Below are positions 1-63,945 of a stretch of DNA of 64,000 bases, piece by piece. The translations under genes and the position numbers were made by a program. Location: the NCBI RefSeq assembly GCF_963506605.1, contig NC_083288.1, positions 3,472,001-3,536,000 of the forward strand. The letters run 5' to 3'. This DNA comes from Zootoca vivipara. Its lineage: Eukaryota. The notes under the pieces were generated by a model, which saw nothing but the letters and a program-made list of their open reading frames with translations, was not told the origin of the DNA and did not search any database. Within the stretch, counting starts at the first letter, position 1. Each line of letters opens with the position of its first letter.

Positions 1-3000
1 GTTGTGAACATCCCCATCTCTGAGTGGCACATGACTCCAGGGGTGCCTGCGCTTAGCCTGGGTTCCTTTTCCTTGGAATTACGGGGCATCCCTCCAGGGA
101 AGTGTGTAGAGGTTTCCCTTACTAGCTTACTTTTCACAAACCAAAAGACCCTTTTCTCTTTTTAACAAAAATATTTTTTATTCATTTTTTACAAAATGAT
201 TTTTTTACATTTCAGCATAAACCATAAGACCCGTATTTACCCTTTAAAAAAATATATATTTTTATTAAAAGAATTACAAGTATGAAGACAAAAATAATAT
301 ACAAAATGCTATCTACCGGTAGTATAGTGTTATCTACCCTTGAATGCTCCCTATTTTGCCTATCCTATTCTATACATCAATTTTAACCTCTCTAACTAAT
401 AAAAGTCCCGCTTGCTGTTTAGAGTGCTGAAAGAGTCAATAGAAAGTGTCCAATCCTCAAATTCACTATGTTGCAGATGTCGTCTTCCCGGCGGCTCCTT
501 TCCCGGCTGATGACATTCTTCCAGGGGTCTTCTTTTCTCCGGACGTCTTCTCCCAGGTTCCAGCAGATAGGCCGCCGTTCATGCAAGAAAGAGAGAAAAG
601 AGATTCTGTTAGAAAAGGTACTAAATCTCAGGAATGTTAGACCCTCTTGTTGCCCACCCCAAACAAAGAAATGGAAGAAAGTTGCTGCTGGGGGATTGCC
701 ACTCAAGAGGATGGCAGAGAGCAAGGAACCGGACCCTGGGCATACACCAGCGACCGGGGGAGCTCCATAAAGCCACAACAACAACAAAAGGTTTCTTACC
801 GCTATGTATGGAGGGTCGTGAGGGCAGCACCACTCCTCTTGGTCGATCCTGATGGCCTTGATGTTCCTGGCGCTGGTCCAGAGTGGATCCCACGGAGAGC
901 AGAAGATGGTATCTCTGCAGCACAACGCTGATGTTCACGTTGCCTTGGCCTGGCGCAACTTCGGACGTTCTGTCACGAGGAGAAAGGGTTTTTGGGGGGA
1001 AACGTCACCTCCAAGGAGCCCACCAGACGTCCAAATACCCAACCAGATGCCTCACTCACCTGGCATGCAGCTCAGGAAGTCCTGCGGGTAAGGTTCCCTG
1101 TGAACACAGCGGAGCAGCCTCCTCACAAGGCGCTGGACCCTGCCTTTCTGCCGATGTTTACAGGCCCGCTGCATGATGTTCAGGCAGCTCCTCCCTGTCC
1201 GCCTGAGCCCTTCTTCCTCGTGCTGCTGCATCTCTTCCAGCCCTGAGTGGCAAGGGAGAAAGGTTGAGCCAGGAATCAGCTTTTCACAAGGCAAAAACTT
1301 GCAAAGCACCCCCACCAGAGCTCCTCCCAGGACCAGGGTGTGGGCTAGGGGGATATTTGTGTGTGAGAGAGAGCAGTGGAGTCACATTCCAATCCTCTTG
1401 GCATGTTCATCTTGTGGCACCTCTGTCTGCACACACACCTGGGAAGCCGCCTTCCCCTAAAGCCCTTTCTCAGAAGAAGCACCCCTCCCTGCCCTCCGTA
1501 AGTCTCACTTACATGTACCATAGGATGCCATGTCTTGATTTTGGATGAAACTGGCATCCCGGAAAGCCAGATGACCTAGAGAGACAGGGCAAGAAAAGGG
1601 ACGTCATCTCGGTGCAAAGCAAGCGGAGACAGAGGCAGCTCGGCAGGAGGACAGGTATGCGTCTAGAGGCCTCCACCCTCGCGGAGCACTCAGAGCAAGG
1701 TGGCCTGGGGACATGCCCATCCTCACTGCCATCGTTACCCAGACGTTACCAGGGAAGGACGTTGCTTGACTTACCCAGAAGCAGAGCTGCCACCCTGGAG
1801 ACTGCTGGCAGCCTGTTGGCAGGCGGCTTCGTACATGTCAAGGCAGCACTCCGAAGGATGTTCTTGCTGAAGGTCTTGCTCTGTCGGCAAAGGCAAAGGA
1901 GAAGTGGCATCAGAGAGGCTTGAGAGCACGGCAGGAGAGCCTGTCACCCCCAAAGACATCCCTGGGCAAAGCTGCCAACAAAGCAGAGTGACCTTACCAG
2001 ATGCTTGGCAGCCTGGTGGAGAGCAAAGTGGAGGCTAAATTTCTCGGGATGCGCCCACCACTTGACTTGTGGGGCTAGATGGGAAAGAGCCCTCCTTGCG
2101 GCCTGCAACACAAGAAGAGAAGAGGGTTACAAATTGCAGGACATAGTCTTGGAAGCTCCTGAGAACAATGACTCCCTCCTACTGCAGAAGTCCACCTCCT
2201 TGGCCCTCACCTTGGCCACCTCGTCCTCGTCTTCGAGGTGAATGAGGACGGCGACCAGTTCATTAACGGCTGCTTCTTCTGTTGTTGTTATGGGAAGCCC
2301 TTGGTCTCTCACCCAGCCCCGAAGCAGCCCCAGATGTTGGATGGCTGATGCCCGGGCAGAGGCTTCCTCCTGTAGGCAGAAAAGATCAGAGGTTGTGTTT
2401 CTCATCAGATCCGTTTCCTTTCTCCTGTCCACCGAGGTGTTTTGAGGCTGCTGAGCCCCCTATCCTCCTCCTGAGGGAGACTGGGGGCAGGGGTGACTCT
2501 CCCCCTGTGTTTTCCAGGCAGGCTTCCAAGAGAAGGTGCTCCAGAGGAACACCCTCCTGAAGCCAGAAGATCTCCGCTGCATGCCAGTCTAAACACCAGC
2601 CTTCCTCTTCCAAAGCATTCCTATCCACCCTGTGTGATGTCATGTGTTCCCTAACACTCACATGGGCAGCCAGACCGCAGTAGGTTGCCACCAGCATCTT
2701 CAGGTCTTCCTCTCCCAGCTCCCTGGACAGGTAGGCTTGGTCTACCAGCTCTATCAACTCTGGGAAGACATCAGCTTCTGCATCAGGGAGGAAATCCAGC
2801 AGCGACAGCCGCAGAAGCAAAGGGTCCTACACAAAAGAGAGAATATTTTCAAAGGTCTGAAAGGCCCCACGCTTTTTCTTTGAGAACAGGCCCTTCAGCA
2901 TTCGGTCAGCAAAAGAGTGCTGGGCCATGATTAGAATCCAGATCTGTGCCCCCCTCCCTCCCTGTGAGCATCACTTGCCATGTCAGAGTCCAGAAGCAGG

Positions 3001-6000
3001 GATATCCCTCTGACGCTGAGCTTCCGGACTTGCAGGTGGTCATGTTTCAGCCAGGTGAGGAGCTGCTCCAGTGTCTCCTCACAGGGATAGACCTGCAGAC
3101 GGCAGCTGAGCAGCTAAAGAGGCCCAAAGAGAAAGAAAGTCTTCAGTGATGAGAGGCTGAGGCAGGCTCTCCTTTTATCCACCACCTGCAGTTCTGCACA
3201 CAGCAAAGCCACTGGAGTGAATGGACCAAAGTTTGTCATGTACATCAAATCCAATGGGTCTACTCTGAGGAGCACTAAAACAGGCAACAGCCCTTAGGCT
3301 CAAAGGAGCCTTGACATAAACCACAGAATATGGAAGTTAAAGGCAGCTGTAAGGTCCAAATTCTGATGGAGGCTGGTTGGAGAACCAAGGACACAAAAGG
3401 AGCCGAAGAACACAAAGCCCAACCCTGGGCAGAAACCAAGCCAGGGCCTCCTTGCTGCACCCATTTCCTCCCGCGTCAGCCCCCCTCACCTCGATGTAGA
3501 TAGCTGCCGCTACTTGTGGCATTCCGGCAAACTCCTGGTCCTCGAGAGCAGCGGTGATGTTTTCCACCATGGGAGGGATCCACCAGTGTCGCTTTCCGAC
3601 AGCTCTGAAATGGAGAACCAGATCTGGGTAAGGAAGGGAAAGGCACCGCAAGAAGCCAACAGGGGCACAATCCGATCCCGTGACTTGACCTCCGTTTGCC
3701 AGACCATTGGGGAAGGTCATCGTGTTCTTCCTCTTACCTCACCATGGCAGACAACCCCTGGCTGAAATTCTCCCGGCAGAAAAGTTGGTCGATGATGGCC
3801 GCCTCTACTTGCTCTCCGGTGGTGCCGAGAAGGAGGTGCAGAACTTCCTTAGCCCCTCTGTAACCAAAGCAAGGCCAGTTTTAGCAGGCGGGTCATTGCC
3901 ACCCACTCCAATTCCTTCCCCATCCTTGCTCCCTAGCAGCAGCCTGAAGGAGAGCCTCCCTTGGAAAACCAAGCTGGACTGGCAACCCCCCGAGGTTGAA
4001 GGGAAAAGGACTCCATTGGCGTCTTTGCAACACACTACTCACCCAAGGAATTCCTGGTCGTAGTGGAAGTTGACTACCATCCCCAGGAGAGCGATCAGCA
4101 GCTGCGGGAAGTTCCGGCGCACAGCTGCCTTGTATACCTCCATCCTGAGGATGGCGTGCAACAGGCTGCTGAGATGTTGCTGGAAGAGAGAGAGGGGCAA
4201 GTCACTTTCCCTGCTTTTCTGCAGAATCCAGAAACCCCTGGATATTCCCCTGGGAAGAAGGAAGCCAGAAACCAGGTGGGTCGTCCTTACCACTTGGGTG
4301 GCAGATTCCGCCAAGGGGCTTTGGTAAAGCTGCTCGGCCATGAGATGGAGCAGTTGTTCTTGGTCGGCCGATGCCAAAACCTCCTTCCATACTCTTTCGC
4401 AGTCTCTGTGAATGCAAAAACAAGAGCAATGGTCAGATTTAAGTCTTCTGCTTGCTGCCATGCCACACAGAGAGGAAATGGCAGCAAGGGCTTTCTGAGC
4501 AAGCCCTGCACCTATTAGCCCAGTAGAACCTGCCAGGAGGGCTCCATACCTGAAGGGAAACTGGAGGAGGTATGCAACCACTTTCGCCAGGTGTTGGTGT
4601 GGCATGATGGACAAAGCAAAGGCGGCCATGTTTCTGCCCTGCACTGTAGGCCCCTGGGTGATCTTATAGAAGGCCTCCAGCAGCACCTCCACCTGTCAGA
4701 GAAAAGGAGAGGGTTGCTGGGAGAGTACAAGGAAGCGGGGCTGTCTGCAGGAGGATCCCTCCATCCCTCATAGAAAGAGGGCCCCCCCTTGACCTGTGCC
4801 ACCACAGCCATCTTCCTTCGAAGGTACCACTCAGGGTCCTTGGGAGTTTTGGACCCAGGCAGCTCCAGGGCGCCAGTTGCCCCCCCTATCCATTCTTGGC
4901 CAAGAGAAGAAGCTTGCCAGTCTGCTCCCAGGAGCAGGACGAGGATTCCCCATTGCTGGACCCATGTTTCTCAGGACCCTTGGCTGAGGTTCCTGTCCTG
5001 ACATTGCCAGGCCTCTCTAAACAAACATGTGTCCTGGCCACCCAATGGCATGAGGTTGCCTCCCCTACAGCAAAGTGGAGAATCTTCTTCTCTCCTACCT
5101 TTGCAGACACCTTACCTCCACTTTTGTGCCGCTAAACTGCTTGATGAACTCTTGCAGCAAGTGGGAGATGTCCAAGGGGTTGAAGCTGCTCTCGACAACC
5201 AGATCGCTGGCCAGGAAGCACATGGCCTCCAAGAGCTGCTCCTCAGGAAGATAGGCACCAAAGACCTGAAGCAAGAGAGGAAGGTCAGAGAGGCCCACAG
5301 GTCAGGGCTGGGGAGCAGAAAGCCCAGGTGCTGTCTCTGCGGAACCCAGAGCATGTGGCTTGAGAGACCACTGTGCCTTGTATGACAGCGACTTACCCTG
5401 GCAAGAGAGTAACAATTATTCAGGAACAATTCAGGAACCGCTCCTCCGGTGGATTGGAGGACCTTCTGAGCTCGGATGAGGAGTGTTTGGTTCCACGACG
5501 TTCGTGCCAGCGTCTCTGCAAAGGAAAGCCAAAGGGTTAGTTCGGGCCTTGCTCACCCCACCCCATGATGCTGGAATGCACTCCTTCCAGTCTTACCTTC
5601 TTTGCGCTGTAGGATGGGCAGAAGATGGCAAAGGGCCTCTGCTGCCCGCTGCCTGCACTCCGGGTCTGGATCCAATGCACACAGACAGGAAATGGCCACC
5701 AGTTGGCCAAGGGAGGATGCAGGAAGCGCTACCGATGGCTGAGAAGAGACCCAGAGAAGTGATTGATAAGAGAAGAGACCCATCACCATTTTCCCTATAA
5801 CATTCTTATTAAATCTTCAAAGCATTCCAAAACATTTATTATCCTATACAGAAAAAAACAAACCATTTCTTTTGACTTCCCACCCCTCTTTTCCTGGTGT
5901 GTGCTTTTTACTCACTAGGATTTGCTCTGCTATGGCCCAGCTCTGTTCTCAAAATGGGTTATGTGCTGGGATGCCCGATTGTCCCTTGGGCACCTTGCAG

Positions 6001-9000
6001 GGTGGGCCTAGAAGGGGCAGCCTGAAGGCCTTGTCAGCCCTGCATGGTTGCAATGCTTCCCTTCAGTAACTCACATATTCCTGGATCTTCTGCAGGAGGG
6101 CGGAAAGATCTTGGAGCGCCTTCCTTCGGATCTTCCCACTCTTCATCCTGGTGACGACATCCATTATTCTAGCCTTCAGCTGGTCCTTTCTGAAGCCGTC
6201 GGGAGGAGGATCAGCCGCACCCAGAGAACCTGTGGTTGAGATGCTGAGGGGAGAGAGGAGGAGCACATTTGTAAAAAGGTTTTATTGCCTTCCATCCTTC
6301 AAAGACCCCAAGCACCAGCACCATAGAAATGGACCCGGGGGGGGGGGAGTGGTTCACATAGGATTACCTTGCAAAAAGATCCTCCTCATCTTCCAGGCTG
6401 ATTACCGATATTTGATCCTCGTCGAAATCAATTCCCTGTCCATGAGATAAGAGAAACAGGAACATCAGAATGTGAAGAATGGATCAGACCCATTCATGAT
6501 CAGGAAAGCACAGACGAGGTAGGTTGGGAAACAAACTGAAAATCTCTGTCCTCCATTTCCTTAGAGACCTTATTCATCCATCCATCCATCCATCCATTTA
6601 GAGCATTTGTACCCTTCTCTTAAGCCAAAAAGGCTCCAAGAGAGCCTTCCATGAAATCAAATGCAAGAAACTCCCTAATGGCAGACTTCTCTTGTAATTA
6701 ACAGTGTGACAAACAGAAATAAAACCCACAAGGAAAGGGGGCAAGGAGGGCAGAGGAAAAGACAACTCCCAAGCTCAGACCCCAGTGTCTAGAATGCTGA
6801 TCCAATGGCTGCCTCCAGATGACAGTTGGGGGAGAGGAGCCCTGAGGGAGCTGGCCTGTCTCAGCAGAGGCCATGGCGCTGTTTCCCATCCGCCAGGCCT
6901 CCTGTCTCTCTCTCCCTCGCCTGCACCTGGGAGCAGCCCTTCCCTGCCATGGACTCTGTGGACAGGTGGGCAGCAGGTCTCCCTGCCTCAGCTCTGCAGA
7001 AAAACCAGCTCCATCTGGCACCCCCTTCCCCTCCACTGGGCCAGCCGCTCCCTCTCTCTTTTCTTCTTCTACTTCTTCTTCATTTTCCCCCTTTCCCTGC
7101 AAACTCTAGTACAAGGAGAACATCCAGCATGTAGAAATAGAAAGGAAGCCTCTCCCACATTCACATGCACATAAATCAGAAGGAATCCTCTGTTCAAAAT
7201 AAGATTCAACCGACTGCAATATAGGACGCTGAATTTCCCTTTTTGGCATTCCTTCTCCCCTTCCAAAGCTCAACCCTTTCTTTGACTTGGTATAGCTCTT
7301 TGCCAAACTTGGAGATACCATTAATCTAGGTTCCAGAGTTAAGTCCCCTGGCCATGGCAACCTCCGCTTACCTCCAGGTTTCTTTGGGACGCCATCTTCT
7401 AATGTAGTGACTGAGCGAAGGTCACTACAGGCCACCTCTGCCAACCTCGAGATGCTGAGGATGCAGGAAGCTCTGTTCAAACGGTCACAAGTTCCGTTGC
7501 TAGGCAACGTCAGTTGAGAATGTGGAATTCCCGGCCTCAGGGCCAAGGTTCTAGGAGAGTCCGTGTGGCCTAGTGGCTAGAGCCATGCAACGCGAGGGTG
7601 ATATTTATACGAGTTTAATACTTTTTCCTGTTCTTTGTATCCTGCTTTGCAGACTCTGGTTGTCTCCCAAAGCAGCTGGCATCGATTTCAAAGAAGGGGG
7701 GGAGACAAGTCCTGTCCTCAGGTTAGGAAAGTCCAAAGACAAGACACCCAATGGAAGGGATGCGGGGGAACAAGGCAGAGGAAGAGCCCCTTTCCCTTGG
7801 CCCAAGGAGAGGCCTGAGATGTCCCCAGGCAAGTCCTGTCCTGTCCTGTCCTGCTGGGGCCACGCTGCCCTTCCCCACCCCCAGCTCTTCTGGGACAGAG
7901 ACGCAGCAACTGACCCTGTAGGCCTTCATGCCCAACACCAGGGGGGCTGTGGGGCTCAAGCCCCTCTCCGATTCCCCTGGGGGGCTTATCTGGCCCCACA
8001 GGCAGCAGCAGCAGGCAGTGCCTGGCAAAGGCTCCCCACCTGCTGAATTTCTGCCTGCCAGAAGAATCACAAGTGTGGAAACCCATCTAAAAGAGAAGGA
8101 AGAGAGAACAAGAAATTCTGCTTCTCTGAGAGCTCCCATATCAGAAATGGATGGTGCTTTAATGCCCAGGGAATGGCAGGTGGTGGTGGTGATTTCTTAA
8201 ATCTGTATGCCACCCTTTCTGACAGCCATTTCAGGGACAGAAGGCCTCCTTTGCAGCCTCCCCGCCATCCATTCTAGAGGTGGGAAGGAGCCCAGAGACC
8301 CTTGAGACCCCCTGGGCAGCGAGAGGCCGAGGGAGACGGAGCTTTGCAAGCAGAGGCTGCTGCTCCAGGAAAGGTCTGGCTGCTATTCTGGGAGCCATTG
8401 GCAGCAGCAGCAGCAGCAGCTCCGCCCACCCCAGAAGAACCAGCTGGCTATTGGCTAGCCTGGAGCGTCCATCAGCCAGCTAGGGAGGGCGGACTCTTCT
8501 GGCGAGGTGCATAGCCAGGTAGGCTGCGCAAGACATGCAGGTTAGGGTGAGGGGGAAACTTGGACATTTGATTTCTATGGACTTCAAGAACATTCCCAAA
8601 GGCGTCCCAAAGGGAGCAGGGGACTCTGTGTGCCCAAAAGGGAACCGATCCGTCTTTGGAAGGCCAGGTAGCCACCCCAGCTGGGGCTTTGCTTCTGGAT
8701 GAGGCCCTTCTGGCTTCCAGGACTGTCCTGAGGGTCAGGGAGCCTCTGTCCAGCCAGGCCTTGGGCAGCCCCTGATTCCCAAGGAGGACCTCCGGGCTCC
8801 CTGGCCCTTCTGGTTCTCCCTCCTCGGCCACCTGGGCCTTGGGACCTCGGCTGGAGACACCCAGGACTTGGCAGAGCCTCCCTCCGTCTCTGCATAGACT
8901 CTCCAAGAGTCCCCCTTTCCCAGGGACTGTCCAGGATTTACAGAAGCCGTCTCGGATCCTGATTTCCTCATTTTCTTACCTCCACTGATGAGAGTCATGG

Positions 9001-9090
9001 TTTGGATGGGGGTCTTTTATCCGTTTTCGCAGTCACACAATCCATCAATCAGTAGCTGAACTGGGATCCACACAGTCAAAAAAACAAATG
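1..9090 (+). repeat. Segmental/tandem duplication, copy 1 (continues left of the window)
   Basis: Position 1 (gttgtgaacatcccc) recurs at 12815 and the ORF track is duplicated (419 to 13233, etc.). Homology ends near cacagtcaaaaaaacaaatg. Confidence 0.97.
935..8998 (-). CDS. Maestro HEAT-like repeat (MROH-family)-like gene, copy 1. In-frame exon chain: 5597-5738, 5397-5515, 5116-5265, 4550-4692, 4291-4405, 4043-4179, 3738-3857, 3490-3604, 2979-3113, 2662-2826, 2211-2369, 1998-2102, 1775-1880, 1513-1575, 1060-1242, 935-969 (stop TGA). Probable further exon 6075-6229; candidate 5' exons up to ATG 8998 are uncertain
   Basis: Sixteen consecutive exons have AG/GT boundaries (one GC donor) and matching phases, giving 1992 nt with no internal stop. 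The peptides resemble MROH HEAT repeats: LGQLVAISCLCALDPDPECRQRAAEALCHLL, WLKHDHLQVRKLSVRGI, RASAIQHLGLL..ELVAVLIHLEDEDEVAK|AARRAL, LEEMQQHEEEGLRRTGRSCLNIM. Minus-strand AATAAA near 177-182 and 261-267. Confidence 0.8.
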
Positions 9091-12050: not shown

Positions 12051-12663
12051 TTGACAAGGTGCCCCATGATATTCTTGTAAAGAAGCTGGTAAAATGCGGG
12101 CTAGACAATGCTACCATTCAGTGGATTTGTAACGGGCTGACTGACCTCACCTGGAGTACTGTGTCCAGTTCTGGGCACCACAGTTCAAGAAGGATACTGA
12201 CAAGCTGGAACGTGTCCAGAGGAGGGCAACCAAAATGGTCAAATGCCTGGAAACAATGCCTTATGAGGAACGGCTTAGGGAGCTGGGTATGTTTAGCCTG
12301 GAGAAGAAAAAGGTTAAGGGGTGATATGATAGCCATGTTCAAATATATAAAAGGATGCCATACAGAGGAGGGTGAAAGGTTGTTTTCCGCTGCTCCAGAG
12401 AAGCGGACACGGAGCAATGGATTCAAACTACAAGAAAGAAGATTCCACCTAAACATTAGGAAGAACTTCCTGACAGTAAGAGCTGTTTGACAGTGGAATT
12501 TGCTGCCAAAAAGTGTGGTGGAGTCTCCTTCTTTGGAGGTCTTTAAGCAGAGGTTTGACAACCATATGTCAAGAATGCTTTGATGGTGTTTCCTGCTTGG
12601 CAGGGGGTTGGACTGGATGGCCCTTGTGGTCTCTTCCAACTCTATGATTCTATGATTCTATGA
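12051..12663 (+). mobile_element. CR1 LINE 3' fragment with internal deletion
   Basis: DKVPHDILVKKLVKCGLD joined to [12 protein letters not shown]...[12 protein letters not shown]...TRSNGFKLQERRFHLNIRKNFLTVRAV, ending in a (TTCTATGA)n tail. Confidence 0.93.
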
Positions 12664-13748
12664 CTTTGGCAGAGACCTCGCTCTTATTTCTTCTTCTTAA
12701 CATTTTCTCATGAGTTTCCCTAGCCTGGATCTTGTCTCAGCCGCTGGAGGTTGCAGGTGAGATGCAGTTGCAGAGAACTGATGAGGAAGTGGGGCAGGAT
12801 GGTGAAGAGGGACGGTTGTGAACATCCCCATCTCTGAGTGGCACATGACTCCAGGGGTGCCTGCGCTTAGCCTGGGTTCCTTTTCCTTGGAATTACGGGG
12901 CATCCCTCCAGGGAAGTGTGTAGAGGTTTCCCTTACTAGCTTACTTTTCACAAACCAAAAGACCCTTTTCTCTTTTTAACAAAAATATTTTTTATTCATT
13001 TTTTACAAAATGATTTTTTTACATTTCAGCATAAACCATAAGACCCGTATTTACCCTTTAAAAAAATATATATTTTTATTAAAAGAATTACAAGTATGAA
13101 GACAAAAATAATATACAAAATGCTATCTACCGGTAGTATAGTGTTATCTACCCTTGAATGCTCCCTATTTTGCCTATCCTATTCTATACATCAATTTTAA
13201 CCTCTCTAACTAATAAAAGTCCCGCTTGCTGTTTAGAGTGCTGAAAGAGTCAATAGAAAGTGTCCAATCCTCAAATTCACTATGTTGCAGATGTCGTCTT
13301 CCCGGCGGCTCCTTTCCCGGCTGATGACATTCTTCCAGGGGTCTTCTTTTCTCCGGACGTCTTCTCCCAGGTTCCAGCAGATAGGCCGCCGTTCATGCAA
13401 GAAAGAGAGAAAAGAGATTCTGTTAGAAAGGGTACTAAATCTCAGGAATGTTAGACCCTCTTGTTGCCCACCCCAAACAAAGAAATGGAGGAAAGTTGCT
13501 GCTGGGGGGTTGCCACTCAAGAGGATGGCAGAGAGCAAGGAACCGGACCCTGGGCATACACCAGCGACCGGGGGAGCTCCATAAAGCCACAACAACAACA
13601 AAAGGTTTCTTACCGCTATGTATGGAGGGTCGTGAGGGCAGCACCACTCCTCTTGGTCGATCCTGATGGCCTTGATGTTCCTGGCGCTGGTCCAGAGTGG
13701 ATCCCACGGAGAGCAGAAGATGGTATCTCTGCAGCACAACGCTGATGT

Positions 13749-16700
13749 TCACGTTGCCTTGGCCTGGCGCAACTTCGGACGTTCTGTCACGAGGAGAAAG
13801 GGTTTTTGGGGGGAAACGTCACCTCCAAGGAGCCCACCAGACGTCCAAATACCCAACCAGATGCCTCACTCACCTGGCATGCAGCTCAGGAAGTCCTGCG
13901 GGTAAGGTTCCCTGTGAACACAGCGGAGCAGCCTCCTCACAAGGCGCTGGACCCTGCCTTTCTGCCGATGTTTACAGGCCCGCTGCATGATGTTCAGGCA
14001 GCTCCTCCCTGTCCGCCTGAGCCCTTCTTCCTCGTGCTGCTGCATCTCTTCCAGCCCTGAGTGGCAAGGGAGAAAGGTTGAGCCAGGAATCAGCTTTTCA
14101 CAAGGCAAAAACTTGCAAAGCACCCCCACCAGAGCTCCTCCCAGGACCAGGGTGTGGGCTAGGGGGATATTTGTGTGTGAGAGAGAGCAGTGGAGTCACA
14201 TTCCAATCCTCTTGGCATGTTCATCTTGTGGCACCTCTGTCTGCACACACACCTGGGAAGCCGCCTTCCCCTAAAGCCCTTTCTCAGAAGAAGCACCCCT
14301 CCCTGCCCTCCGTAAGTCTCACTTACATGTACCATAGGATGCCATGTCTTGATTTTGGATGAAACTGGCATCCCGGAAAGCCAGATGACCTAGAGAGACA
14401 GGGCAAGAAAAGGGACGTCATCTCGGTGCAAAGCAAGCGGAGACAGAGGCAGCTCGGCAGGAGGACAGGTATGCGTCTAGAGGCCTCCACCCTCGCGGAG
14501 CACTCAGAGCAAGGTGGCCTGGGGACATGCCCATCCTCACTGCCATCGTTACCCAGACGTTACCAGGGAAGGACATTGCTTGACTTACCCAGAAGCAGAG
14601 CTGCCACCCTGGAGACTGCTGGCAGCCTGTTGGCAGGCGGCTTCGTACATGTCAAGGCAGCACTCCGAAGGATGTTCTTGCTGAAGGTCTTGCTCTGTCG
14701 GCAAAGGCAAAGGAGAAGTGGCATCAGAGAGGCTTGAGAGCACGGCAGGAGAGCCTGTCACCCCCAAAGACATCCCTGGGCAAAGCTGCCAACAAAGCAG
14801 AGTGACCTTACCAGATGCTTGGCAGCCTGGTGGAGAGCAAAGTGGAGGCTAAATTTCTCGGGATGCGCCCACCACTTGACTTGTGGGGCTAGATGGGAAA
14901 GAGCCCTCCTTGCGGCCTGCAACACAAGAAGAGAAGAGGGTTACAAATTGCAGGACATAGTCTTGGAAGCTCCTGAGAACAATGACTCCCTCCTACTGCA
15001 GAAGTCCACCTCCTTGGCCCTCACCTTGGCCACCTCGTCCTCGTCTTCGAGGTGAATGAGGACGGCGACCAGTTCATTAACGGCTGCTTCTTCTGTTGTT
15101 GTTATGGGAAGCCCTTGGTCTCTCACCCAGCCCCGAAGCAGCCCCAGATGTTGGATGGCTGATGCCCGGGCAGAGGCTTCCTCCTGTAGGCAGAAAAGAT
15201 CAGAGGTTGTGTTTCTCATCAGATCCGTTTCCTTTCTCCTGTCCACCGAGGTGTTTTGAGGCTGCTGAGCCCCCTATCCTCCTCCTGAGGGAGACTGGGG
15301 GCAGGGGTGACTCTCCCCCTGTGTTTTCCAGGCAGGCTTCCAAGAGAAGGTGCTCCAGAGGAACACCCTCCTGAAGCCAGAAGATCTCCGCTGCATGCCA
15401 GTCTAAACACCAGCCTTCCTCTTCCAAAGCATTCCTATCCACCCTGTGTGATGTCATGTGTTCCCTAACACTCACATGGGCAGCCAGACCGCAGTAGGTT
15501 GCCGCCAGCATCTTCAGGTCTTCCTCTCCCAGCTCCCTGGACAGGTAGGCTTGGTCTACCAGCTCTATCAACTCTGGGAAGACATCAGCTTCTGCATCAG
15601 GGAGGAAATCCAGCAGCGACAGCCGCAGAAGCAAAGGGTCCTACACAAAAGAGAGAATATTTTCAAAGGTCTGAAAGGCCCCACGCTTTTTCTTTGAGAA
15701 CAGGCCCTTCAGCATTCGGTCAGCAAAAGAGTGCTGGGCCATGATTAGAATCCAGATCTGTGCCCCCCTCCCTCCCTGTGAGCATCACTTGCCATGTCAG
15801 AGTCCAGAAGCAGGGATATCCCTCTGACGCTGAGCTTCCGGACTTGCAGGTGGTCATGTTTCAGCCAGGTGAGGAGCTGCTCCAGTGTCTCCTCACAGGG
15901 ATAGACCTGCAGACGGCAGCTGAGCAGCTAAAGAGGCCCAAAGAGAAAGAAAGTCTTCAGTGATGAGAGGCTGAGGCAGGCTCTCCTTTTATCCACCACC
16001 TGCAGTTCTGCACACAGCAAAGCCACTGGAGTGAATGGACCAAAGTTTGTCATGTACATCAAATCCAATGGGTCTACTCTGAGGAGCACTAAAACAGGCA
16101 ACAGCCCTTAGGCTCAAAGGAGCCTTGACATAAACCACAGAATATGGAAGTTAAAGGCAGCTGTAAGGTCCAAATTCTGATGGAGGCTGGTTGGAGAACC
16201 AAGGACACAAAAGGAGCCGAAGAACACAAAGCCCAACCCTGGGCAGAAACCAAGCCAGGGCCTCCTTGCTGCACCCATTTCCTCCCGCGTCAGCCCCCCT
16301 CACCTCGATGTAGATAGCTGCCGCTACTTGTGGCATTCCGGCAAACTCCTGGTCCTCGAGAGCAGCGGTGATGTTTTCCACCATGGGAGGGATCCACCAG
16401 TGTCGCTTTCCGACAGCTCTGAAATGGAGAACCAGATCTGGGTAAGGAAGGGAAAGGCACCGCAGGAAGCCAACAGGGGCACAGTCCCATCCCGTGCCTT
16501 GACCTCCGTTTGCCAGACCATTGGGGAAGGTCACCGTGTTCTTCCTCTTACCTCACCATGGCAGACAACCCCTGGCTGAAATTCTCCCGGCAGAAAAGTT
16601 GGTCGATGATGGCCGCCTCTACTTGCTCTCCAGTGGTGCCGAGAAGGAGGTGCAGAACTTCTTTAGCCCCTCTGTAACCAAAGCAAGGCCACTTTTAGCA

Positions 16701-19700
16701 GGCGGGTCATTGCCACCCACTCCAATTCCTTCCCCATCCTTGCTCCCTAGCAGCAGCCTGCAGGAGAGCCTCCCTTGGAAAACCAAGCTGGACTGGCAAC
16801 CCCCCGAGGTTGAAGGGAAAAGGACTCCATTGGCGCCTTTGCAACACACTACTCACCCGAGGAATTCCTGGTCGTAGTGGAAGTTGACTACCATCCCCAG
16901 GAGAGCGATCAGCAGCTGCGGGAAGTTCCGGCGCACAGCTGCCTTGTATACCTCCATCCTGAGGATGGCGTGCAACAGGCTGCTGAGATGTTGCTGGAAG
17001 AGAGAGAGGTGCAAGTCACTTTCCCTGCTTTTCTGCAGAATCCAGAAACCCCTCGATATTACCCTGGGAAGAAGGAAGCCAGAAAGCAGGTGGGTCGTCC
17101 TTACCACTTGGGTGGCAGATTCCGCCAAGGGGCTTTGGTAAAGCTGCTCGGCCATGAGATGGAGCAGTTGTTCTTGGTCGGCCGATGCCAAAACCTCCTT
17201 CCATACTCTCTCGCAGTCTCTGTGAATGCAAAAACAAGAGCAATGGCCAGATTCAAGTCTTTGGCTTGCTGCCATGCCACACAGAGAGGAAATGGCAGCA
17301 AGGCCTTGCTTTCTGAGCAAGCCCTGCACTTTGCCAACCTTTCCCTTAGCCCAGTAGAACCTGCCAGGAGGGCTCCATACCTGAAGGGAAACTGCAGGAG
17401 GTATGCAACCACTTTCGCCAGGTGTTGGTGTGGCATGATGGACAAAGCAAAGGCGGCCATGTTTCTGCCCTGCACTGTAGGCCCCTGGGTGATCTTATAG
17501 AAGGCCTCCAGCAGCACCTCCACCTGTCAGAGAAAAGGAGAGGGTTGCTGGGAGAGTACAAGGAAGCGGGGCTGTCTGCAGGTGGATCCCTCCATCCCTC
17601 ATAGAAAGAGGGGCCCCCCTTGGCCTGTGCCACCACAGCCATCTTCCTTCGAAGGTACCACTCAGGGTCCTTGGGAGTTTTGGACCCAGGCAGCTCCAGG
17701 GTGCCAGTCTGCTCCCAGGAGGGGGAGGAGGATTCCCCATTGCTGGACCCATGTTTCTCAGGACCCTTGGCTGAGGTTCTTGTCCTGACATTGCCAGGCC
17801 TCTCTAAACAAACATGTGTCCTGGCCACCCAATGGCATGAGGTTGCCTCCCCTACAGCAGAAGAAGTGGAGAATCTTCTTCTCTCCTACCTTTGCAGACA
17901 CCTTACCTCCACTTTTGTGCCGCTAAACTGCTTGATGAACTCTTGCAGCAAGTGGGAGATGTCCAAGGGGTTGAAGCTGCTCTCGACAACCAGATCGCTG
18001 GCCAGGAAGCACATGGCCTCCAAGAGCTGCTCCTCAGGAAGATAGGCACCAAAGACCTGAAGCAAGAGAGGAAGGTCAGAGAGGCCCACAGGTCAGGGCT
18101 GGGGAGCAGAAAGCCCAGCTGCTGTCTCTGCGGAACCCAGAACATGTGGCTTGAGAGACCGCTGGGCCTTGTGTGACAGCGACTTACCCTGGCAAGAGAG
18201 TAACAATTATTCAGGAACAATTCAGGAACCGCTCCTCCGGTGGATTGGAGGACCTTCCGAGCTCGGATGAGGAGTGTTTGGTTCCACGACGTTCGTGCCA
18301 GCGTCTCTGCAAAGGAAAGCCAAAGGGTCAGTTCGGGCCTTGCTCACCCCACCCCATGCTGGAATGCACTCCTTCCAGTCTTACCTTCTTTGCGCTGCAG
18401 GATGGGCAGAAGATGGCAGAGGGCATCTGCTGCCCGCTGCCTGCACTCCGGGTCTGGATCCAATGCAGACAGACAGGAAATGGCCACCAGTTGGCCAAGG
18501 GAGGATGCAGGAAGCGCTACCGATGGCTGAGAAGAGACCCAGAAAAGTGACTGATAAGAGAAGAGACCCAGCACCATTTTCCCTAAAGCATTCTTATTAA
18601 ATCTTCAAAAGATTCCAAAACATTTAGCATCCTATACAGAAAAAAACACCATTTCTTTTGACTTCCCACCCCTCTTTTCCTGATGTGTGCTTTTTCCTTC
18701 TTTTTACTCACTAGGATTTGCTCTGCTATGGCCCAGCTCTGTTCTCAAAATGGGTTATGTGCTGGGATGCCCGATTGTCCCTTGGGCACCTTGCAGGGTG
18801 GGCCTAGAAGGGGCAGCCGGAAGGCCTTGTCAGCCCTGCATGGTTGCAATGCTTCCCTTCAGTAACTCACATATTCCTGGATCTTCTGCAGGAGGGCGGA
18901 AAGATCTTGGAGTGCCTTTCTTCGGATCTTCCCACTCTTCATCCTGGTGACGACATCCATTATTCTAGCCTTCAGCTGGTCCTTTCTGAAGCCGTCGGGA
19001 GGAGGATCAGCCGCACCCAGAGAACCTGTGGTTGAGATGCTGAGGGGAGAGAGGAGGAGCACTTTTGCAAAAAGGTTTTATTGCCTTCCATCCTTCAAAG
19101 ACCCCAAGCACCAGCACCATAGAAATGGACCCGGGGGGGGGGGGAGTGGTTCACATAGGATTACCTTGCAAAAAGATCCTCCTCATCTTCCAGGCTGATT
19201 ACCGATATTTGAGCCCTCCTGGCAGGTTCTACTGGGCTAATAGGTGCAGGGCTTGCTCAGAAAGCCCTTGCTGCCATTTCCTCTCTGTGTGGCATGGCAG
19301 CAAGCAGAAGACTTAAATCTGACCATTGCTCTTGTTTTTGCATTCCTTCTCCCCTTCCAAAGCTCAACCCTTTCTTTGACTTGGTATAGCTCTTTGCCAA
19401 ACTTGGAGATACCATTAATCTAGGTTCCAGAGTTAAGTCCCCTGGCCATGGCAACCTCCACTTACCTCCAGGTTTCTTTGGGACGCCATCTTCTAATGTA
19501 GTGACTGAGCGAAGGTCACTACAGGCCACCTCTGCCAACCTCGAGATGCTGAGGATGCAGGAAGCTCTGTTCAAACGGTCACAAGTTCCGTTGCTAGGCA
19601 ACGTCAGTTGAGAATGTGGAATTCCCGGCCTCAGGGCCAAGGTTCTAGGAGAGTCCGTGTGGCCTAGTGGCTAGAGCCATGCAACGCGAGGGTGATATTT

Positions 19701-21168
19701 ATACGAGTTTAATACTTTTTCCTGTTCTTTGTATCCTGCTTTGCAGACTCTGGTTGTCTCCCAAAGCAGCTGACATCGATTTCAAAGAAGGGGGGGAGAC
19801 AAGTTCTGTCCTCAGGTTAGGAAAGTCCAAAGACAAGACACCCAATGGAAGGGATGTGGAGGAAGAAGGCAGAGGAAGAGCCCCTTTCCCTTGGCCCAAG
19901 GAGAGGCCTGAGATGTCCCCAGGCAAGTCCTGTCCTGTACTGTCCTGTCCTGCTGGGGCCGAGCTGCCCTTCCCCACCCCCAGCTCTTCTGGGACAGAGA
20001 CGCAGCAACTGACCGTGTAGGCCTTCATACCCAACACCAGGGGGGCTGTGGGGCTCAAGCCCCTCTCAGATTCCCCTGGGGGGCTTATCTGGCCCCACAG
20101 GCAGCAGCAGCAGGCAGTGCCTGGCAAAGGCTCCCCACCTGCTGAATTTCTGCCTGCCAGAAGAATCACAAGTGTGGAAACCCATCTAAAAGAGAAGGAA
20201 GGGAGGGAGGGAGGGAGGGAGGGAGGGAGGAAGGAAGGAAGGAAGGAAGGAAGGAAGGAAGGAAGGAAGAAGGAAGGGGGACGAGAGAACAAGAAATTCT
20301 GCTTCTCTGAGAGCTCCCATATCAGAAATTGATGGTGCTTTAATGCCCAGGGAATGGCAGGTGGTGGTGGTGATTTCTTAAATCTGTATGCCACCCTTTC
20401 TGATGGCCATTTCAGGGACAGAACCCTCAAGGTCCAAAGGCCTCCTTTGCAGCCTCCCCGGCATCCATTCTAGGGGTGGAAAGGAGCCCAGAGACCCTTT
20501 AGACCCCCCAGGCAGCGAGAGGCAAGCAGAGGCTGCTGCTCCAGGAAAGGTCTAGCTGCTTCTCTGGGAGCCATTGGCAGCAGCAGCTCCGCCCACCCCA
20601 GAAGAGCCAGCTGGCTATTGGCTAGCCTAGAGCGTCCATCAGCCAGCTAAGGAGGGCAGACTCTTCTGGCGAGGTGCATAGGCAGGTAGGCTGCGCAAGG
20701 CATGCAGGTTAGGGTGAGGGGGAAACTTGGACATTTGATTTCTATGGACTTCAAGAACATTCCCAAAGGCGTCCCAAAGGGAGCAGGGGACTCTGTGTGC
20801 CCGAAAGGGAACCGATCAGTCTTTGGAAGGCCAGGTGGTCAACCCAGCTGGGGCTTTGCTTCTGGATGAGGCCCTTCTGGCTCCCAGCACTGTCCTGATG
20901 GTCAGGGAGCCTCTGTCCAGCCAGGCCTTGGGCAGCCCCTGATTCCCAAGGAGGACCTCCGGGCTCCCTGGCCCTTCTGGTTCTCCCTCCTCGGCCACCT
21001 GGCCCTTGGGACCTCAGCTGGAGACACCCAGGACTTGGCAGAGCCTCCCTCCGTCTCTGTGGCGTAGACTCTCCAAGTGTCCCTCTTTCCCAGGGACTGT
21101 CCAGGATTTACAGAAGCCGCCTCGGTTCCTGATTTCCTCATTTTCTTACCTCCACTGATGAGAGTCAT
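13749..21168 (-). CDS. MROH-like gene, copy 2 (core exons open; 5' part rearranged at 19211-19345)
   Basis: Paralogue of copy 1 at offset 12,814 in the 3' part. Equivalent exons include 18385-18526 and 18871-19025. I saw no stop or frameshift in the core exons checked. Lacks copy-1 segment 6416-7245. Confidence 0.75.
19211..19345 (+). other. 135-bp inverted templated insertion (reverse complement of 4410-4544)
   Basis: Identical base for base to the reverse complement of 4410-4544. Replaces the counterpart of 6416-7245. Confidence 0.95.
20196..20276 (+). repeat. (GGGA)n(GGAA)n microsatellite
   Basis: Directly visible; absent at the paralogous site near 8095-8105. Confidence 0.95.
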
Positions 21169-21534
21169 GGTTTGGATGGGGGTCTTTTATCCATTTTCGC
21201 AGTCATACAATCCATCAATCAGTAGCTGAACTGGAATCCACACAGTCACAAAAACTAATGCTGCCATATTTCCAGCTTCCACCCAGAACACACCACAAAA
21301 TTCATTGTTCACAGTTGCATTTGTTCAGACTCATCAAAGAAAAAATCACAGCTCAGGATTTTTAATCAGGCATCCCTCAGACTACCATACCCACCCTACA
21401 AAATGAAAACAAACAAACAGATCAACAAGGTGAATCATCTACCACAAGACAGACCTAGAAAACAAAAGAACATCAGTTGTTACCACTTATCATTTGCAAC
21501 TGAACACACTGGATCATATCAATGAACTTCAGAC

Positions 21535-22051: not shown

Positions 22052-25000
22052 ATGCACTCTCTACGGTTCCTGAGTGCTGGGGCTTTGGTATCCAATACAG
22101 AGCTGATAAAAGGAAATATTGGCAGTGTTGCACACAACCTTTTCCCTCTTCTTTTTAAGGCAAGTTACTTGCAGGAACAAGGTGAAGTTCTTCACGATTT
22201 GGTGGCAAACTGGCCACTGAAAGAACTTAACATTGGAAAACTGTTGGGGAAGACGATAGACCACCAGGAAGACATCAGTAGCAGAGCCTGCTCGGTGTGC
22301 TTGACCAGTTGCCTAACTGGCCTTAGAGACTATGTGCTGAATTGTTCATCTCCATATGCAAAGAGACTCAAACTGGTGGACTTAACAGGCCTCAAGGATG
22401 TTGAAGTTCAGCTCTGCAATTGTAGGAAAACAATGGGACGCTGGGCCAGGACAGAGCTGCTGTCGAAGATCTGCTATGATCTGCTTGTTGAAATGCAAAG
22501 GCTGCAGTTCAGTCCAGATGTGTTTGAGATTTCAGTAGACGTTCTTACTGATGTCTTTGTCACTGAACGAAGTTATGAGCTGGTTGTCCAGGCCTTGCTT
22601 ATGAGGTGCCATTGTCCACTAAAAATTCTCTGTGCATCCTTCCGAGTGGACAACCTAGCCCTGCGGAAGCTCTTCTACATCATAAAGCTTACAGATCCCT
22701 CTTTGCTGCTCAAATTTGAAATAGTCCACAATGTTCGGTTGGAAATGGAACATCTGCACATGCTCTTTAATAACGTCCACTTTCCTCAGCTGACGTCGCT
22801 CACACTCCCAGCTAGGACGTTCAATGTACGAAGGTTCACCCCAGAGGATGAGGCCATTCTTGTAGGAATTGGAGAAAAGTTAAGCCAGATGACTCAACTG
22901 ACTGAGCTGAGCCTAGCATTTTCCACACTCACGGGAAGGATACGTAAACTACTCAGGTAATGTGCTCCAGATCTTGCTGGTGACACAATTGAGACAATAT
23001 TTACGACTAATATGTAACGTTTTAAAAAGGGAAAGCATAGGAAGCTTTCTTTTATTGTCATGCTCATGCTTATCTAATTTAGCATTGTCTACTCTGTGCA
23101 GCATGGTGGGATGCGGGTGACGCTGTGGGTTAAACCACGGAGCCTAGGGATTGCCGATCAGAAGCTCAGCGGTTCGAATCCCCTCAACGGGTGAGCTCCC
23201 ATTGCTTGGTCCCTGCTCCTGCAAACCTAGCAGTTTGAAAGCACGTCAAAGTGCAAGTAGATAAATAGGTACTGCTCTGGCGGGAAGGTAAACAGCGTTA
23301 CCATGCGCTGCTCTGGTTTACCACATGACCTGGAAGCTGTACACTGGCTCCCTCGGCCAATAAAGCAAGATGAGCACTGCAACCCCAGAGTCGGACACGA
23401 CTGGACCTAATGGTCAGGGGTCCCTTTACCTTTACCTTACTCTGTAAGTCCCAAAGGAAGGACTTTTTACAGTTCCATCTAACTGGAGATTCAGGAATTG
23501 AACCTGAGATCATCTTGAGTCCCCCATGACCTATTTTTTTGCTGCAAAATAAATATTTGCAAGTGTGGGTGCCAGTGCCATTCTTGGTAGTTTTAGGCTC
23601 TAACATTATTTTTAAATTTGTTTAAAAGATTTTGAACTGACCTTTCAGGGCACACTGCTCTCACCTTTTCTGGAAACAAATTGCTCTGAGAAGAGGCATA
23701 CCCTGGCCACACTTTTCACTCCCCACCCCCCACCCCAAATCAGAGAACCACTTGAAGAATAATACAAGCAAAAAAACTCCCCACCTTGCTCTTTGTACAG
23801 CGGTTGCCTTATACGCCTCATGGGAGTGGCAGGAATCACAACAGCGCACACACTTTGGTGGGATGAAACAGGCCACAAGTTCGTTGTCTTTCGAGACAGA
23901 GGGATGCCAACAGCAACAATAAGCAGGGGTGGCAAGGGAAGTGGAACAAGGACTAGACCCTATTCCACTCAACCTTTGCTGTTGGAGAGTTATTTCAATT
24001 GTTTGGGGAGCACCCAGTGCAGCCACACACCCCTGGGAGTTGAACGATGTTGTATCTTAATGTGGTGTGAGCCAAGCACCAGGGATCCCACTAGGCAACT
24101 GGGGGTGGGGGTGGGGAGAACTGGCACAAGGCTGGGGCCCTTCTAAGCTAGGGGTGTGCCTTCTGCATTGCCTGCCCCAGCCCCTAATGGGGATCCCCCT
24201 TTATGTTCCATCCTGCTCAATGACATTTTGCTCAAAGTTGTGATACAATTTCAGAGAATTTCAGGAATTTCAGAGTAAAATTCCTTTCCAGCCCTGTCCA
24301 CCAGTGACCCAAGAGTCCAGAGAAGCTCTATTACTGCAGGAGGGAAGGGAAGGAAGTTGGAGACCTCAGCTGATGGGCAACGGAGGTTTTTAAGTTTCCA
24401 GGTGCCCAGCCCACCTGAGCCCTGCATCCTCCTGTTGGATCTTGTAAGAGACAACCAGAAAAGCAGAAACCCTCTCTTCCGGCCACCTAGAGCTGCCACA
24501 CCACTGAACAAATGGTGCCTTTCTTGCAAGGGAACATGGAGTAGTGACTTGTACACAAACTGTTTTGTGTTTCACATATGGAACAGTTTCAAGGGAACTT
24601 GTGCATATGTCTCCTGCCACTGAAATGTACTGTGTGTCATTTACAAAATACTTTGGATACGCAAAACACATCAGGGTCCCCCCCCCCAAGGCATTTGGGC
24701 ACCTGACCCGAGCCACTATGAGGTACCTCCTCCCCTCAGCCAGTGGGTTTAACCTTTCAAAATGGGTGCAGGTTTAGCTGAGAGATGATTGGGCATTAAT
24801 TTTCTAAATGATTCATAGTGTTAGAAGAACGTCTCCTCCCAACTCATCCAGCAGCTTGGTTCTGGTTTACTGCCCTCCCATTAGTTTCTCTTCTTGTTTG
24901 AAGCAGATATTTTGATTTGATCCTATTGTTTTGACTAAACAATTTGTGGGAATGTTAGGGATGTGGATTAGGATATATTATTAGATAGATCCTATCCAAG

Positions 25001-45661: not shown

Positions 45662-45799
45662 NNNNNNNNNNNNNNNNNNNNNNNNNNNNNNNNNNNNNNN
45701 NNNNNNNNNNNNNNNNNNNNNNNNNNNNNNNNNNNNNNNNNNNNNNNNNNNNNNNNNNNNNNNNNNNNNNNNNNNNNNNNNNNNNNNNNNNNNNNNNNN
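45662..45799. other. Assembly gap (N run)
   Basis: Run of Ns. Confidence 1.
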
Positions 45800-47963: not shown

Positions 47964-48167
47964 AACATTAGGAAGAACTTCCTGACAGTAAGAGCTGTTC
48001 AGCAGTGGAATTTGCTGTCAAGGAGGGTGGTAGAGTCTCCTTCTTTGGAAGTCTTTAAGCAGAGGCTTGACAGGCATATGTCAAGAATGCTTTGATGGTG
48101 TTTCCTGCTTGGCAGGGGGTTGGACTGGATGGCCCTTGTGGTCTCTTCCAACTCTACGATTCTATGA
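47964..48167 (+). mobile_element. CR1 3' end
   Basis: Highly similar to 12451-12655; ends tacgattctatga. Confidence 0.92.

Positions 48168-50008: not shown

Positions 50009-63945
<13,937 letters not shown>

Follow-up and report, generated by a model that had tools for sequence, protein, structure and literature searches.

Inverted templated insertion of a paralogous intron segment at an 830-bp deletion in a tandem MROH7-like gene pair of Zootoca vivipara

We found that copy 2 of a tandem pair of MROH7-like genes in Zootoca vivipara lacks 830 nt that are kept in copy 1 (6416-7245, minus strand, by colinear alignment of the copies), and that a 135-nt inverted piece stands in their place (19211-19345, plus strand). 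This piece is identical at 135 of 135 positions to the reverse complement of 4410-4544, that is, to almost the whole of one intron of copy 1. All positions are those of the window, the entire 64,000-nt stretch of contig NC_083288.1 that was analyzed. A first-pass annotation of the window had already described this inverted replacement, and both the self-comparison of the window and the colinear blocks of the two copies bore it out. The evidence supports a microhomology-flanked, templated, inverted insertion accompanying the 830-bp deletion, for which DNA of the neighboring paralogue was probably the template.

The two copies of the duplicated unit were delimited by self-comparison at 1-9090 (copy 1) and 12815-21260 (copy 2), both on the minus strand. 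Colinear blocks pair 1-4884 with 12815-17716 (99.0% identity), 4915-6415 with 17702-19212 (96.7%), 7240-8106 with 19335-20205 (97.9%) and 8098-9090 with 20279-21260 (91.6%). On the basis of homology, the host could be assigned to two MROH7-like (Maestro HEAT-repeat) genes lying in tandem: the match of one exon to PF21047, the Maestro HEAT profile, exceeds the gathering score (E = 4.9e-8), and the longest open reading frame matches lacertid proteins, the best of which at full coverage is Zootoca vivipara MROH7 (98% identity in the alignment). The gene model was built by mapping two proteins, P0004 and P0016, onto the window and then refining the splice sites, and it is a model by homology only. 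The copy-1 gene spans 7395 to about 1061 with 18 exons and 17 introns, the introns measuring, from 1 to 17, 933, 124, 336, 81, 131, 423, 144, 111, ~185, ~130, 376, 152, ~292, ~108, 117, 199 and 270 nt. Exon 1 (7395-7372 in copy 1) holds the start codon plus 7 codons; it is retained in copy 2 (19466-19489, minus strand) with the start codon, 8 codons in all and a GTAAGT donor. Exon 2 was placed at 6438-6368 in copy 1 by protein mapping, and a remnant of it, with the acceptor missing, lies at 19165-19210 in copy 2. Two other features of the gene could be observed. Intron 12 (2978-2827, minus strand) has an apparent GC-AG splice pair with the donor GCAAGT, and a purine-rich simple repeat upstream of exon 1 spans 94 nt in copy 2 (20188-20281) and 20 nt in copy 1 (8089-8108).

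The match between the insert and 4410-4544 could not be extended by even one base at either end. At the left junction, the dinucleotide GA (19211-19212) is common to the copy-1 flank (6414-6415) and the donor. At the right junction, GCATTC forms an exact microhomology (copy-1 7246-7251 and 19340-19345), and with the preceding T5 (19335-19345 in all) the homology reaches 11 of 12 positions between the ancestral flank TTTTTGGCATTC (copy-1 7240-7251) and the donor sequence TTTTTGCATTC. This 11-mer occurs in the two copies of intron 7 and in the insert, and nowhere else in the 64 kb. Thus, the microhomologies GA and GCATTC noted in the first reading of the sequence were confirmed, the one on the right being longer than had been described. 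The unambiguously inserted part amounts to 127 nt (19213-19339). No untemplated bases were found at the insert, and the donor is still present and intact. There is neither a target-site duplication nor a poly(A) tract at the insert, the target showing the 830-bp deletion instead, and no exon-exon joint lies inside it. The insert places the sense strand of intron 7 on the plus strand and is therefore antisense to the minus-strand host gene. The distance from donor to insert is 14.7 kb on the chromosome and ~2-3 kb in the paralogue-aligned register. No other templated indels were found between the two copies, whose other large indels are microsatellite length changes.

The donor segment lies within intron 7 of copy 1 (4406-4549, minus strand), a stretch of 144 nt from GTATGG to CACAG which, read on the minus strand as GTATGG...TTGCATTCACAG, has GT-AG ends and a pyrimidine tract. 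Joining the exons at this intron reproduced 30 of 30 residues of P0004 after splice-site refinement. Furthermore, the 48 codons of the intron are skipped exactly in nine of the ten annotated proteins aligned, which come from Zootoca, Podarcis and Lacerta; the tenth is an open reading frame call on a short Logan contig. By homology and canonical splice signals, 4406-4549 can be regarded as intron 7. Exactly GTATG at the 5' end and ACAG at the 3' end of the donor intron are lacking from the insert, so that the earlier description of the donor as a 144-nt intron short of these bases alone held true on both the sequence and the 30 residues. It should be noted that the copy-1 intron is in frame and stop-free, which has roughly a one-in-ten chance over 48 codons, so its retention would be compatible with the sequence. 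A single raw RNA run, sampled at 6%, gave no reads on the gene and 6 partly fitting reads upstream of exon 1.

Copy 2 has an intron 7 of its own (17220-17380, minus strand, 161 nt), which matches the insert at 92% over 106 nt in BLAST. Within the donor span, it differs from the insert by 6 substitutions and by indels of 4 and 13 nt, and two of the six substitutions depend on the alignment, adjoining the 13-nt indel. The first-pass annotation was right that this intron is not the donor and about both indels, and had counted 4 substitutions. At every site separating the two introns, the insert agrees with that of copy 1 (0 of 135 differences), and the donor is the copy-1 version of intron 7. If retained, the 161-nt intron of copy 2 would shift the frame. 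The likely branch-site motif of intron 7 also varies, reading CTGAC at 4440 in copy 1 and CTGGC at 17254 in copy 2. In copy 1, intron 8 (111 nt) is, like intron 7 (144 nt), stop-free and in frame, and an open reading frame of 217 codons runs through exons 7-9 (4039-4692, minus strand). Some annotated Podarcis isoforms keep the intron-8 stretch.

The lost 830 nt comprise the last 807 nt of intron 1, including the pyrimidine tract and the acceptor (7245-6439), and the first 23 nt of exon 2 (6438-6416). Contigs of other paralogues from three independent DNA studies show, as loose ends, the copy-1 type of continuation past 19210/19212 and before 19335, and exon 2 is complete in the annotated orthologues. 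This makes copy 1 the ancestral state and copy 2 the derived one. Removal of the exon-2 acceptor and 23 nt has probably broken the full-length frame of copy 2. Candidate acceptors are CCAG and GGAG just upstream of the exon-2 remnant and an AG after a pyrimidine-rich stretch inside the insert; as read from the sequence, all three would lead to early stops. Thus, copy 2 is probably unable to join exon 1 to exon 2 in frame, and downstream starts are possible. As inverted repeats ~1.9 kb apart, the insert and the intron 7 belonging to copy 2 enclose exons 2-7 on the pre-mRNA, an arrangement that may favor hairpins or back-splicing. Motifs that are modest candidates for the stalling of a fork are present as well, namely (CATC)6 and a 23-nt pyrimidine run in the lost segment, and a G11-12 run ~68 nt from the left breakpoint (6337-6347 and 19133-19144).

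Divergence between the two copies is uneven. We counted 5 differences in 1-3650 (0.14%; against 12815-16464) and 65 differences in the 2765 nt of 3651-6415 (2.4%; against 16465-19210), and divergence to the right of the insert was about 2%. Such unevenness reveals recent sequence exchange between the copies, and the jump at about 3650/16465 appears to mark the limit of a recent tract of gene conversion over the 3' half of the gene. At the local divergence of 2.4%, the probability of zero differences in 135 nt is about 0.04. On this estimate, the insertion is younger than the local divergence between the copies, and its template was of the copy-1 type. In public Logan contigs, the depth of the insert bin was 5-20 times below that of the flanks and 5-7 times below that of copy 2's own intron, figures that are rough sums of contig depths and not copy counts. 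This suggests that the copy-1 version of the intron is rare in the genome and that the version in copy 2 is the common one of the family.

Considering these observations, we think that a DNA template switch (MMBIR/SDSA-like) on the neighboring paralogue probably produced the insert. In intron 1 of copy 2, a fork would have collapsed or a break arisen, 830 bp would have been lost, and the lesion would have been healed by a microhomology-mediated switch onto the DNA of the adjacent copy. About 127-135 nt would have been copied off the opposite strand, which would account for the inversion of the insert, and the new strand would have been captured by the other end via the T5-GCATTC match. With the copies paired by homology, a pairing for which their history of conversion is evidence, the break would have lain ~2-3 kb from copy-1 intron 7, and the neighbor would for that reason have been used and not copy 2's own intron. 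Two polarities of synthesis can be considered. In the first, the left 3' end (...TTTGA) would prime on the plus strand of the copy-1 intron and copy ~130 nt, and the new end (...TTTTTGCATTC) would be captured at the right by the 11/12 match; since the template would then be the antisense strand, it would have to be DNA. In the second, the right 3' end (...GAATGC) would prime on the sense strand 4 bases from the 3' end of the intron, and synthesis would stop 5-7 nt short of its 5' end, on a template of either DNA or intron RNA. From the scar we infer the break itself, a DNA template and a pathway, which could be MMBIR, aberrant SDSA or long-range snap-back.

Several lines of evidence argue for a DNA template switch. 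First, the inverted copy, the homology at both junctions, the absence of filler and the retention of the donor match the published MMBIR-type signature. Second, the donor is the adjoining paralogue, and the two copies demonstrably exchange sequence (5 versus 65 differences). A DNA switch during recombination between the copies predicts a donor in the adjacent paralogue, whereas a diffusible RNA patch does not. Third, intron 7 has no match in Rfam and no unusual fold stability (z-score -0.35 in RNA folding), and there is no sign of RNA in the insert. The first-pass annotation had named a switch to a neighboring paralogue as the simpler alternative, and we agree. On the other hand, a fit that falls 5 and 4 nt short of the two intron ends would arise by chance with a probability of only ~0.0005-0.005, or 0.001-0.017 for the 127 nt, and a template distance of 14.7 kb together with a tract of 135 nt exceeds typical Pol-theta or MMB-TI events. 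A distance of 14.7 kb (~2-3 kb aligned) is within the reported range of FoSTeS-type switches.

MMBIR-type templated insertions are inverted, have a nearby template and microhomology at both junctions, and often involve replacement; some 100 of them in the germline, each at least 25 bp long, were found per human genome (PMC8421209). The insert resembles such MMBIR/FoSTeS products (MMB-TI, PMC8421209) in that it is an inverted, germline-heritable copy from the same chromosome with replacement at the target, and three of their features, a surviving template, inverted orientation and microhomology at both junctions without filler, were found here. The template, however, is 14.7 kb away (~2-3 kb in the paralogue-aligned register) and not ~100 bp, the MMBSearch definition seeking templates within 100 bp only (PMC8421209), the tract measures 127-135 nt, and the donor is approximately a whole intron of a paralogue. 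In foldback or snap-back synthesis (PMC11724301) and in Pol-theta end joining, the copy is likewise inverted, with one end priming at microhomology and the other capturing the strand. Inserts templated by foldback can be as long as about 150 bp in yeast (PMC11724301), but the products of these two routes are mostly <35 bp and are copied beside the break, whereas here 135 nt came from another gene copy; an insert of a few to ~30 nt from the break flank, as expected of Pol-theta, was not what we observed. Thus, of the mechanisms that had been proposed for a microhomology-flanked templated insert, the MMBIR type agrees with the features found, the template distance excepted, and Pol-theta end joining disagrees in both the size and the source of the insert.

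The close fit of the insert to the intron ends was examined by placing a 135-nt segment at random and asking for a summed end distance of <=9 nt to any intron. The chance of such a fit was 0.0016-0.0046 within the gene and 0.0005-0.0014 within plus or minus 20 kb. For the unambiguous 127 nt (summed distance <=17) it was 0.001-0.017, and with the length left free (20-500 nt) about 0.001. These values, ~0.0005-0.017 overall, are low yet not decisive, because the fit was noticed after the fact, because the gene holds ten introns of 81-199 nt, and because the 11/12 homology of the target flank to the pyrimidine tract of the intron determines where one end lies. Matches to a pyrimidine-rich flank are enriched at intron 3' ends. 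The caution that small introns make a chance fit possible had been expressed earlier. Under a DNA template switch, the choice of intron 7 as template and the near-exact fit would be a coincidence, which is made likelier by a gene full of 80-200-nt introns and by a capturing homology that lies in the pyrimidine tract of the intron.

The same fit had led to the proposal that a germline break was repaired from an excised intron RNA or its cDNA. According to this explanation, which we keep as an unlikely alternative, a near-full-length, debranched copy-1 intron 7 served at the copy-2 break: the right end (...GAATGC) would pair with GCAUUC 4 bases from the 3' end of the intron, Pol theta or a retroelement reverse transcriptase would run to 5-7 nt from the RNA 5' end, and the product would join on the left via GA. 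The insert indeed lies wholly within the intron, and the polarity permits such a route, since the sense strand is the template when synthesis is primed from the right. Excised introns are also produced at the neighboring gene and would be locally concentrated. Moreover, class 2 templated sequence insertion polymorphisms (TSIPs) are known, which have no target-site duplication and no poly(A), show microhomology and in some cases have intronic donors (PMC5110952). Our insert is similar to them in all these junction features, end-joining features included, as well as in the target deletion and in a donor from a transcribed region, but known class 2 donors, like known RNA patches in general, are scattered genome-wide (PMC5110952), whereas our donor is the neighboring paralogue and the insert bears no proof of an RNA stage. 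No mark of RNA origin (untemplated bases, poly(A) or an exon-exon joint) could be identified, and the fit is the sole hint of an RNA intermediate, given that an insert made only of intron carries no splice joint; one of the two fitting ends is also explained by the 11/12 target-flank homology. In addition, the insert is colinear and error-free across CTGAC, the likely branch site ~27 nt before the 3' end, which excludes a lariat as the template. A debranched linear intron, which is short-lived, would thus be needed, and intron 7 has neither a stabilizing structure nor a known RNA family. The lack of gene expression in the RNA run sampled (6% of the run) and the T5 that extends the right homology, unused unless a bulged primer was trimmed, also argue against an RNA template. 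The observation on the intron ends stands; as one case, noticed after the fact, it cannot decide between DNA and excised intron RNA as the template.

A DNA template might also have been found within copy 2. If its own intron 7 was then of the copy-1 type, a snap-back of the left 3' tail could have copied it, and gene conversion from another paralogue could later have overwritten the source. The inverted orientation is the exact outcome of such an intrastrand foldback, the intron lies 1.9 kb from the break and would be reachable by resection, gene conversion is active in this copy pair, and the depth data (5-7 times the insert bin) make copy 2's present version of the intron seem the common one of the family. 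However, with 2-2.4% divergence on both sides of the insert, the later conversion must have spared the indel itself, and two events are required where one suffices, which renders this course of events very unlikely in our opinion. Scarcely probable, too, is an assembly artefact, in which a chimeric read was built in or members of the multi-copy MROH family were collapsed. Such an error could be suspected from the depth of the flank contigs (5-20 times the insert bin) and from the public contigs, which at this place are 100-300 nt long and of which none among the Logan matches listed bridges a junction. An assembler error would not, however, leave an inverted stretch of 135 nt, a colinear return exactly 830 bp on and microhomology at both joints, and in three DNA studies each bin of the region is covered by Logan contigs, with no joint or conflict reported. 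Finally, intron gain or transposition by reverse splicing (discussed in PMC11146597), which likewise moves a near full-length intron, is excluded by the antisense orientation and the absence of both splice sites; the insert, which replaces 830 bp, is not a new intron. A LINE-mediated insertion or class 1 TSIP retrocopy can be rejected by the absence of a target-site duplication and of poly(A), with an 830-bp deletion in their stead.

With a DNA template switch as the preferred explanation, the locus shows in clean, natural form how a deletion can be healed by an inverted templated insertion from one tandem paralogue into another. If the template was RNA after all, it would be a natural case, in a vertebrate, of break repair returning intron RNA to the genome, with relevance for RNA-templated repair and for the spread of intron-derived sequence. 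Should templated insertions favor intron ends genome-wide, this would be the first population-scale evidence for excised introns as repair templates in the vertebrate germline; should there be no such excess, the present case would be attributable to chance in a gene with many small introns.

Some other features of the window were also observed. The region 58000-62000 is AT-rich (GC 31-35%), with GC skew up to +0.36 and AT skew up to +0.26, and no long tandem array was found in it. Runs of N occupy 35154-35287 and 45662-45799. A dispersed repeat of ~350 nt is present in three copies of 80-91% identity and in both orientations (23114-23439, 36860-37211 and 52358-52711), and a further repeat pair lies at 12452-12655 and 47964-48167.
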